Assembly: GCA_965202585.1 (NCBI GenBank)
Contig: OZ241834.1
Location: 25,854,001-25,918,000 of the forward strand
Direction of reading: 5' to 3'
DNA length: 64,000 nt
Source: Thalia democratica
Taxonomy: Eukaryota
The notes beneath the pieces are model-generated. The model was not told where the DNA came from. It did no database searches and saw only the letters and a program-made list of their open reading frames with translations. The translations under genes were made by a program, and so were the position numbers. Positions 6,332-8,285 of the stretch are shown here, piece by piece (positions within the stretch are counted from its first letter, which is position 1; each line of letters starts with the position of its first letter).

Positions 6332-6419
6332 TTTACAACGTGACAGACGACATTTCTTTCACCTGTCTCAAGACCTTTGTAAGCAAAAGGTTCAAATCCA
6401 AGGTGCGAACAATAAAATG
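6332..6419 (-). CDS. HPD: Most upstream HPD exon found ([x]CA then [29 protein letters not shown]); its 5' end overlaps the histone-array boundary
   Basis: Clear FYC..LGFEP.AY.GLETG.R.VV.HV match; gttagt donor in phase 2 joins the next exon in frame; the 5' boundary assumes the aacag acceptor at 6421-6420 (phase 1) and is less certain. Confidence 0.88.
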
Positions 6420-8285
6420 CTGTTCAATTACAATTAAACTACAACTGAAACATGCTTAACAATTCAAAACTGGTGTAACACATAAATGTAAACAACATCG
6501 ATTGTTCAAAAGAAAGAGAACACTATTAACAAGTACACAATTTACAAAACAAAATACCTTAATAAAATGATGAACTTGTATAAACAAATCTTTTATTTTA
6601 CAAAGCTTACATCTACTTACTTGATTTAAGCTTTCTAATCTTGTCAAGCATATGAAATAAACCAATTGATTAGCTAAAACATGGTACAAAGAAAAGAAGC
6701 AAAAAACTTGTTACCACTTGTTTGTTAGCCTTATGTACGCTATACATAAGTAAACTGAAATTACTGTAACTTGTTGCTTTAAGCTGTGTAGTTTTTATAA
6801 ATCTAAAGAAGAAGAAAAAACTGGACAAAGCGAAACCAAAACTTTTTTTAGCCTTCATTTTTTTACAGCTTATTATGTGATGGTACAAGTTCCATAATAG
6901 GCAAACAACAATGTAAAACTTTGAATCAAGCAAATACTTTGTTTTATATGGTCTATAATTGAATAAGATAACAGTTACTTTGTTTCAAGTTTATATGTTA
7001 TTGCTACAACAGCTATGTTCTTAACGACATCCGAGAATAAAATGTAACTTATCCTAAGCTGTGTTTTTAACTACATTAACAGTAAGCTAGAGATAACTAG
7101 TTACGAATTTTGAAAAGCAAACATTTAGTCAATGAAATCAATGGTACAGAACATTATGATTAATCTAGGTTGAGTAAACTAAGAAATCACTATTAGCAGT
7201 AAAGCAGTTAAAACACATGTTTAACTTGGTAAGCACTTCAATCGTAAACTTTAAAAGACAGTACTGTTGTTGTTTCAAAATATGTTTCAAGAAAGTAGTA
7301 AGTTGTTCTATGTTGTTTCGACTGACTTTAAAACTTTATGAGAAGTGACAAAACAAAGTTTGAAAAAAAAACTTACTTGCATTATTTTCCAGTTAAAAAG
7401 TTTCAAAGATAGATTGAAAGGTTATGAGTGCTGATTGTAAACAAAGCTTTATTCAAACACTAAGTTTGTCAATCTTATTTCTAAACTTTTTCATTTAGAT
7501 TTTCTTACTCGATTTTATTTTGTATATAATGCTGCTTAAAAAATAAACCAACCTCTTTTTTTACGTAAAATTTTTCATCCAAAAGGTATCAGCTTTTGTT
7601 TAAGTTCAAATTTAGTGCTAGTGTTCATAAGCTTTTTCGACTTATTTACTTCTTTGAATTTAATTAACTTTATTTTGTTTGGAAAATTTACAACCAAATC
7701 CATTTGTTCACTTTTATCAGCACACTTTATTCGGTTGAAATCTGCAAAGTTAAAGTTCTTAGTTTGATCAAGGTTTAAGTTTAACGAGCAAAATTGCATC
7801 AGTTATTTTTTAAACTGTATAACAGCTTCAATCAGTTGTTTGAAACACTAATTGAATGTTAAACTACTTATCTTTTAAACTAGTTTTTCATACACACTGA
7901 AAAATAAAGTTTGTGTTTAAATGTAGTTTACAACTTTAAACAAGTATCATCATAGTTACTGTACAGCACGTTTTTGAAAGGTTGTTTGGAAAACATTGTT
8001 GTAAGGTAAGTTACTAGTATGTGCAACAACAAAGCTATCTAGTTGTCTGTTTAATAAAAGTTTTGAGTACATTGCTTATGAGTAATCATAAGCAGTAAAG
8101 CTAAAAAAAATGAACACTTTTATTCTTTTGGAATTACTTTTTACACATTAGTTTAAACTGTAATTAACTTGAACATACTTGATAGAACTTACGATTAACA
8201 AAACTCCATGAAATCGATATAATGAAATTTTGTTTAAGGTAAAAAAAAACCTTGTGCTTTGTTAAAACTTTATTACTTTAGGTGA

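Follow-up and report, generated by a model that had tools for sequence, protein, structure and literature searches.

Tandem arrays of replication-dependent histone quintets are known from the early genes of sea urchins and from the HisC locus of Drosophila. Repeats can also donate splice acceptors, as exonised antisense Alu elements do, and tandem arrays undergo microhomology-mediated deletions and rearrangements, by MMEJ or by template switching. In amphioxus a further class of repeat, the mirages, consists of exon-intron boundaries duplicated in tandem in the manner of minisatellites (Ebner et al. 2010, PMC3087553, citing Adh3 work). Mirage units are 10–160 bp long with tens of exon bases each, and the copies sit in the adjoining intron, where they are dispensable for normal splicing (PMC3087553).

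The locus described here lies in a window of 64,000 nucleotides, by which we mean the whole stretch of DNA analysed, and compares in part with each of these systems. Like the sea urchin early genes and Drosophila HisC, it has five genes per unit, head-to-tail units, 3' stem-loops, a homogenised core and diverged edges. Unlike them, it carries all five genes on one strand in the order H1-H3-H4-H2A-H2B, has an AT-rich spacer of 4.5 kb, and has one end within an exon of an unrelated, oppositely oriented gene, which encodes 4-hydroxyphenylpyruvate dioxygenase (HPD/HPPD). As in a mirage, a tandem unit starts just inside an exon and carries a splice signal. An AG and six exon bases recur in every unit, but the word is common and the six bases may reflect chance or microhomology. 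In place of a short unit of 10–160 bp made at the junction, there is a 7.2-kb unit with five genes, common to relatives that are 70–93% identical and older than the junction needs to be. As with an exonised Alu, the repeat would supply the acceptor tract of its host gene, although here the exon is conserved and pre-existing, no new exon has arisen, and an array of genes, not a mobile element, provides the repeat. The junction also resembles those left by MMEJ or template switching, being sharp, with few shared bases, no longer homology and one end in a recombination-prone array. It differs from observed MMEJ junctions in that its microhomology is deduced from a coding requirement rather than read from the partner sequence before the event.

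The histone array and its left boundary

The array comprises seven head-to-tail units, c0 to c6, and a decayed partial unit, c7 (Table 1), with a unit period of 7211–7256 bp. The open reading frames of each unit read as H1, H3, H4, H2A and H2B, all on the plus strand, and Pfam assigns the corresponding genes of related contigs to Linker_histone, Histone and Histone_H2A_C. Each histone gene is followed by a stem-loop, GGTCCTTTT(C/T)AGG(A/G)CC, of which there are 35 in the array, five per unit, where none is expected. The copy after H2B scores 30.1 bits against Rfam RF00032 (E = 1e-5), below the family gathering score of 34. With five genes per unit, 3' stem-loops and head-to-tail units in concerted evolution, this is a replication-dependent histone array. 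H1 differs in length between units, with 184 residues in c0 and c1, 186 in c2, c3 and c5, and 176 in c4 and c6. The differences between the variants (8645-9196, 23142-23699 and 37626-38153) include a two-residue insertion near residue 14.

Table 1. Coordinates of the histone array, the HPD exons and the junction between them, numbered from the first letter of the window.
Feature	Position	Strand	Remarks
Other HPD exons	5456-5591, 5040-5236, 4808-4885, 3962-4196, 3325-3447, 896-1012	-	
Donor of the HPD exon at the boundary	6331-6326	-	AA/GTTAGT
HPD exon at the boundary, codons 34-63	6332-6419	-	88 nt; predicted phase 1 start, with CA completing codon 34
Exon/repeat overlap	6414-6419		6 nt; CATTTT on minus strand (exon) = AAAATG (repeat unit)
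Putative acceptor AG, sole usable candidate	6421-6420	-	In repeat sequence; upstream tract ttgtaattgaac = spacer
In-frame TGA capping exon frame on 5' side	6426-6424	-	
Acceptor-like sequence AG + C/TATTTT, internal copies	13669-13676; others start 20905, 28147, 35389, 42600, 49841, 56502	-	
Spacer-word sites	6414, 13669, 20905, 28147, 35389, 42600, 49841, 56502		
Histone array	6414-~57840	+	7 head-to-tail units and decayed partial c7; 51.4 kb
c0	6414-13668	+	
H1 of c0	8645-9199	+	
H3 of c0	9381-9791	+	
H4 of c0	9972-10283	+	
H2A of c0	~10466-10846	+	
H2B of c0	~11010-11369	+	
c1	13669-20904	+	
c2	20905-28146	+	
c3	28147-35388	+	
c4	35389-42599	+	
c5	42600-49840	+	
c6	49841-56501	+	~640 bp deleted
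c7, decayed right edge of array	56502-57840	+	~10% diverged over unit phases 1-680 and 1593-2005; followed by a stretch at 77%, then unique DNA

Units c2 to c5 form a core in which any two differ by 2–7 substitutions. Distance from the core units rises to 1.65% in c0, 2.1% in c6 and about 10% in c7, edge units overall falling between 1.2 and 10%, and both sides of the array show the usual edge divergence. An argument for a young left edge was dropped because c6, at the opposite side, lies at a comparable distance from the core units, and the left junction is not datable from that divergence. The second unit, c1, is a hybrid whose first 5980 bases are c0-like (6 differences) and whose remainder is core-like. 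The switch falls at about 19650, some 70 variants (1.1–1.3%) separate the c0 type from the core, and the change may mark the border of an array domain or a switch of haplotype in the assembly.

The left boundary is sharp. The spacer word AAAATGCTGTTCAATTAC, with up to two mismatches allowed, occurs at eight sites in the window, where shuffles give 0.02; the first is at 6414 and the rest follow about every 7.24 kb. When the eight sites are aligned, c0 and c1 are identical rightward of 6414 and share nothing leftward, with the break at 6413/6414. The letters on the two sides of the break are ...GCGAACAAT and AAAATGCTG in c0, and ...GTCCTTAA and AAAATGCTG in c1. The c1 sequence left of the boundary is the end of a unit, ...GTGTCCTTAA, and is unrelated to the left side of c0; to the right, identity is perfect for 286 nt up to a first difference at 6700. 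An earlier note on this DNA had begun the spacer homology at 6414, as at 13669, and had described a 51-kb array beside an exon. The alignment bears out the first point, BLAST of unit 1, with seven units and a decayed partial one between 6414 and ~57840, gives 51.4 kb for the second, and all coordinates of that note hold. At the position equivalent to 6419, the last base of the overlap between repeat and exon, c0 and c1 have G, c2 to c7 have A, and two related metagenome contigs, L008 and L007, have A and C respectively. The G is one of the roughly 70 variants common to c0 and the first 5980 bases of c1.

Outside the histone genes the window is 22–28% G+C. The unit spacer (for example 18600-23200, in any unit) contains decayed subrepeats of 860–930 bp that are detectable by nhmmer with E down to 6e-9. 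They flank the histone genes on both sides, and relative to the window L007 has extra copies and L008 one fewer. In the comparison with L007, the best-conserved spacer stretch, at 13513-13672 and the equivalent phase of every unit (L007:600-760), is 78–90% identical as against about 70% elsewhere. Rfam and tRNA scans of the 150 bases before the unit boundary gave no match, and in the spacer at large no RNA gene was found beyond the histone stem-loop. Local alignment against AT-rich controls did not support an origin of the spacer start in the H2B 3' flank or in half a stem-loop (p = 0.16–0.98). To the right of the array lie 6 kb at 22–25% G+C with weak C-type-lectin-like open reading frames on the plus strand. 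Two of these, at 62278-62817, look like a C-type lectin domain in two halves (Pfam Lectin_C, E = 0.028 at 62644-62817) and may mark a gene, or the relic of one, that separates the array from any HPD exon further upstream.

Relatives of the array are found in the sea. The nearest matches to the array H1, at 92–99%, come from marine metagenomes and from a catalogue of marine transcripts, all as unnamed proteins, while exact look-ups of two H1 variants of the window and of a spacer reading frame found none on record. L008, from Tara Oceans, is 93% identical to the unit over the genes and 85–87% over the spacer; for L007 the values are about 80% and 70%. In both contigs the unit end runs straight into the next unit start, and the alignment is unbroken across the point equivalent to 6414, which a profile also crosses with E = 4e-42 and 8e-36 in the two. 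The unit and its internal contiguity hence predate the divergence of these animals. Judged by these alignments the histone array is old, much older than the HPD junction needs to be. Among JGI metagenome contigs, neither the junction nor the spacer start found a match.

HPD and the exon at the boundary

Left of the array, seven HPD exons (2–8) on the minus strand splice to 325 open codons, with GT/AG at every intron. Matches to fish HPD by tblastn cover residues 34–357 at 52–79% identity per exon. The product is collinear with HPD over both barrel domains and keeps the conserved residues, and among 30 near-invariant columns a single one is changed, from I to V; several bona fide HPDs score worse in the same test. 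Protein searches for HPD of this species or a close relative, including a profile seeded with the window exons, gave matches dominated by fish, and the contigs of the nearest HPD fragments (L002, L003 and L005) stop short of exon 2.

Both ends of the gene are incomplete in the window. Exon(s) for residues 1–33 are absent from all six frames, including the array and the 6 kb beyond it. Regular expressions for the N-terminal strand motif FWVGNAKQAA (residues ~20–33) found no match in six frames of the window, and tblastn with five HPD N-termini at E up to 2000 gave chance matches only. Two stretches tried as a 5' exon, KFHYIDF (8230-8210) and TFWMKN (7587-7570), are chance matches with stops nearby. 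The missing 5' exon(s) may lie beyond 64000. At the other end, the sole candidate in the window for the last exon, at approximately 215-290 on the minus strand, reads FFRTPGFLGPNFLSAFFFVE and then a stop. It has GFLGPNF where 157 of 158 homologues have GFGxGNF, and 8 residues after the motif where the family tail has 16 or more. This candidate is either a decayed copy, in which case the true last exon may precede the window start, or a damaged 3' end of the gene.

The exon that meets the array matches fish HPD residues 34–63 in its minus-strand frame. On its 5' side the frame is capped by a TGA, and between that TGA and the conserved codons F-Y-C there is a single AG, at 6421-6420. The array would then start 6 nt inside the exon, and the adjoining intron, with the AG, would be spacer. 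The 5' edge at 6419 is thus predicted from frame and homology. On the minus strand the six bases shared by exon and repeat are CA-TTT-T, which complete codon 34, encode the conserved Phe/Tyr 35 and open the codon for Tyr 36 with its first base. The other acceptors of the gene are tttAG, ttgcAG, ttaaAG, tactAG and tttcAG; gaacAG at the boundary is the poorest in T but within their range. The earlier note is upheld in reading 6419-6414 as HPD coding sequence that meets a TGA at 6426-6424, and in finding the only in-frame acceptor AG within repeat sequence; the same acceptor-like sequence recurs in all seven other units. Its likening of that acceptor to the AT-rich acceptors elsewhere in HPD also stands, gaacAG being the least T-rich of them. 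At all seven internal positions the acceptor-like copy is followed by spacer and no HPD coding sequence, and no further copy of the exon was found within the repeat unit.

Comparison with zebrafish HPD (L001) places the exon edges in an evolutionary setting. The zebrafish introns lie at 31/32 phase 0, 66/67, codon 81 phase 1, 108/109, 138/139, codon 174 phase 2 and codon 200 phase 2. Those at 108/109 phase 0, codon 174 phase 2 and codon 200 phase 2 coincide exactly with introns of the window gene, and those at codon 81 phase 1 and 138/139 are absent from it. The exon at the boundary has its 3' edge at codon 63 phase 2, 10 nt inward of zebrafish 66/67, and its predicted 5' edge at codon 34 phase 1, 7 nt inward of 31/32. 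The 3' shift is certainly genuine because the reading frame requires it, and shifted introns are thus a property of this exon in this lineage. With the zebrafish intron 7 nt upstream, the predicted 5' edge would likewise be lineage-specific. If the zebrafish position were ancestral here, the junction would have deleted 7 exon nucleotides and broken the frame. The "exact" exon edge described earlier therefore stands as a 6-nt overlap of exon and repeat, and is weakened in that the edge itself is predicted and specific to the lineage.

Origin of the junction

We tentatively favour a secondary junction, in which microhomology joined an old histone array to the acceptor of HPD exon 2 and HPD probably still functions across the array. 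The left end of the array would then be a secondary, non-homologous breakpoint, and the array would not have been made from the HPD intron. An internal point of the spacer would have been joined to the 3' end of the first long intron of HPD via a short shared word, AAAATGCT, that is AAAATG + CT, which takes in the acceptor AG together with six bases at the exon start. The likeliest event would be a deletion running from the array toward the exon, although the join may instead stem from an insertion or from a rearrangement of another kind. Histone spacer would now make up at least 2.2 kb at the 3' end of the HPD intron, branch region and pyrimidine tract included, and HPD would be expressed from exon(s) beyond the 51-kb array, more than 57.6 kb upstream. 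The boundary, the exon frame, the age of the unit and the intact body of HPD are shown; from them we infer what kind of event took place, that the AG at 6421-6420 is used and that HPD is expressed across the array.

The position of the boundary may reflect selection on the neighbouring gene. Any cut deeper into the gene would cost a conserved enzyme one of its exons, which would make the exon edge the last position that selection allows. Deletions from an unstable array would remove the intron freely and stop at the exon, and surviving boundaries would accumulate at the exon edge wherever array sequence can replace the acceptor tract. How far the position itself calls for an explanation is another matter. 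With 14 exon edges spread over the 5.5 kb of HPD, a break placed at random has a chance of about 3% of landing no more than 6 nt from one of them (14 x 13 / 5524). The earlier claim that such a position is unlikely to be coincidence was overstated, given that chance of about 3%, the commonness of AATAAAATG, which recurs many times in the window, and an edge that rests on a lineage-specific predicted splice site. The coincidence is suggestive, not compelling.

The case for microhomology comes from what the shared bases encode. They specify the conserved x-F-Y, and are for this reason best read as sequence that both partners already had. By our estimate, spacer bases put in place of HPD bases would match these residues in just a few percent of cases, and given such poor odds the exon most likely already read CA-TTT-T. 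If the acceptor AG was also pre-existing, the partners shared AAAATGCT, a typical microhomology, and the AG need not be new. The earlier suggestion that the event created a new acceptor may hold only for the branch region and the tract upstream of the AG, which are certainly repeat-donated; the AG itself may sit inside the microhomology, AAAATG + CT.

Several points stand against the preferred secondary junction. The exon(s) for residues 1–33 were not found in the window and use of the acceptor is a prediction; in a transcript crossing the array seven identical decoy acceptors would precede the real one; the zebrafish intron position, if ancestral, would mean a frame broken at the junction; and c0 looks no younger than an old edge would. 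The same gap in the gene speaks for an alternative that we consider unlikely, namely that HPD is broken. On this account a recent rearrangement with one end in the array cut the gene 6–13 nt from the exon start, the 5' exons are lost or elsewhere, the spacer AG is unused and the exon-edge position is chance. The first 33 codons are indeed missing from the whole window, and the zebrafish intron 7 nt upstream means that the exon may once have been longer. The last-exon-like piece departs from an otherwise almost universal motif, but the window may stop just short of the true last exon. Landing this near an exon edge by chance, at about 3%, is within reach. Exons 2–8, however, show no stop, frameshift or loss of conserved residues, so the break would have to be very recent, at an estimated neutral divergence of less than about 1%. 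At its other edge, too, the exon departs from fish (codon 63 phase 2 versus 66/67), and such shifts appear normal for this exon. We give splicing across the array about twice the weight of a truncated HPD, because a gene without its 5' end keeps so clean a body only briefly.

Birth of the array in place, as a giant mirage, is less likely again. Here the founding tandem duplication would have broken six bases inside the HPD exon, and each unit would start with a copy of the exon edge and acceptor. Every unit does begin with AG + C/TATTTT, exon-intron-spanning tandem repeats with units of 10–160 bp are a described class in amphioxus (PMC3087553), and the exon is displaced at both edges when compared with fish, a change that such repeats could bring about. 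Against this, the six exon nucleotides shared are indistinguishable from microhomology, the 7.2-kb unit is some 50 times the largest mirage unit described, and none of the 14 HPD junctions in the window has a splice-junction echo in its introns. Age also argues against it, the array and its internal contiguity predating the split from relatives that are 70–80% identical.

The subrepeats bear on birth in place as well. They lie on both sides of the genes, and the order and spacing of the blocks before and after the unit boundary match those of the preceding periods. One subrepeat alignment crosses the boundary, with a weak left part, and the 120 nt left of the boundary are not significant alone against AT-rich controls (p = 0.4–0.5). 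The register appears to run through the 6414 point, as a cut of a periodic array would leave it. If it is continuous, 6414 is an arbitrary position in an already periodic spacer, which argues that the array was cut there and not born there. Unit age and the apparent register together make a secondary junction the better reading than birth in place. Of the two origins that the earlier note had offered, carving of the unit from the HPD intron is accordingly disfavoured, and the evidence leans towards a join by microhomology. The fullest form of the first, in which the histone locus was born inside the HPD intron-exon junction and phased by it through splice-junction-centred duplication, with HPD still spliced across 35 antisense histone genes and past seven decoys, is about as improbable as birth in place as such, or slightly more so.

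Least probable of all is an assembly artefact, in which the path joins two array-bearing loci or haplotypes or the junction is chimeric: the near-identical units (2–7 bases between c2 and c5) and the haplotype-like switch of unit type near 19650 in c1, about 1.3% apart, would allow it, but the 64 kb contain no N, overlap assemblers do not join on 6 bases, the HPD-spacer junction should exist in reads, and the risk is confined to the link between left and right flanks through the array.

Consequences for HPD and the array

If HPD is expressed, as the preferred secondary junction would have it, its pre-mRNA runs antisense through 35 active histone genes, ignores seven copies of the acceptor and uses the eighth. 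The locus would then be a natural test of splice-site choice and of interference between opposed transcription, and would show that selection on a neighbouring exon can fix, with single-base precision, where a tandem gene array stops. If instead HPD is cut, the locus would represent a fresh structural loss of a tyrosine-breakdown enzyme through array instability.
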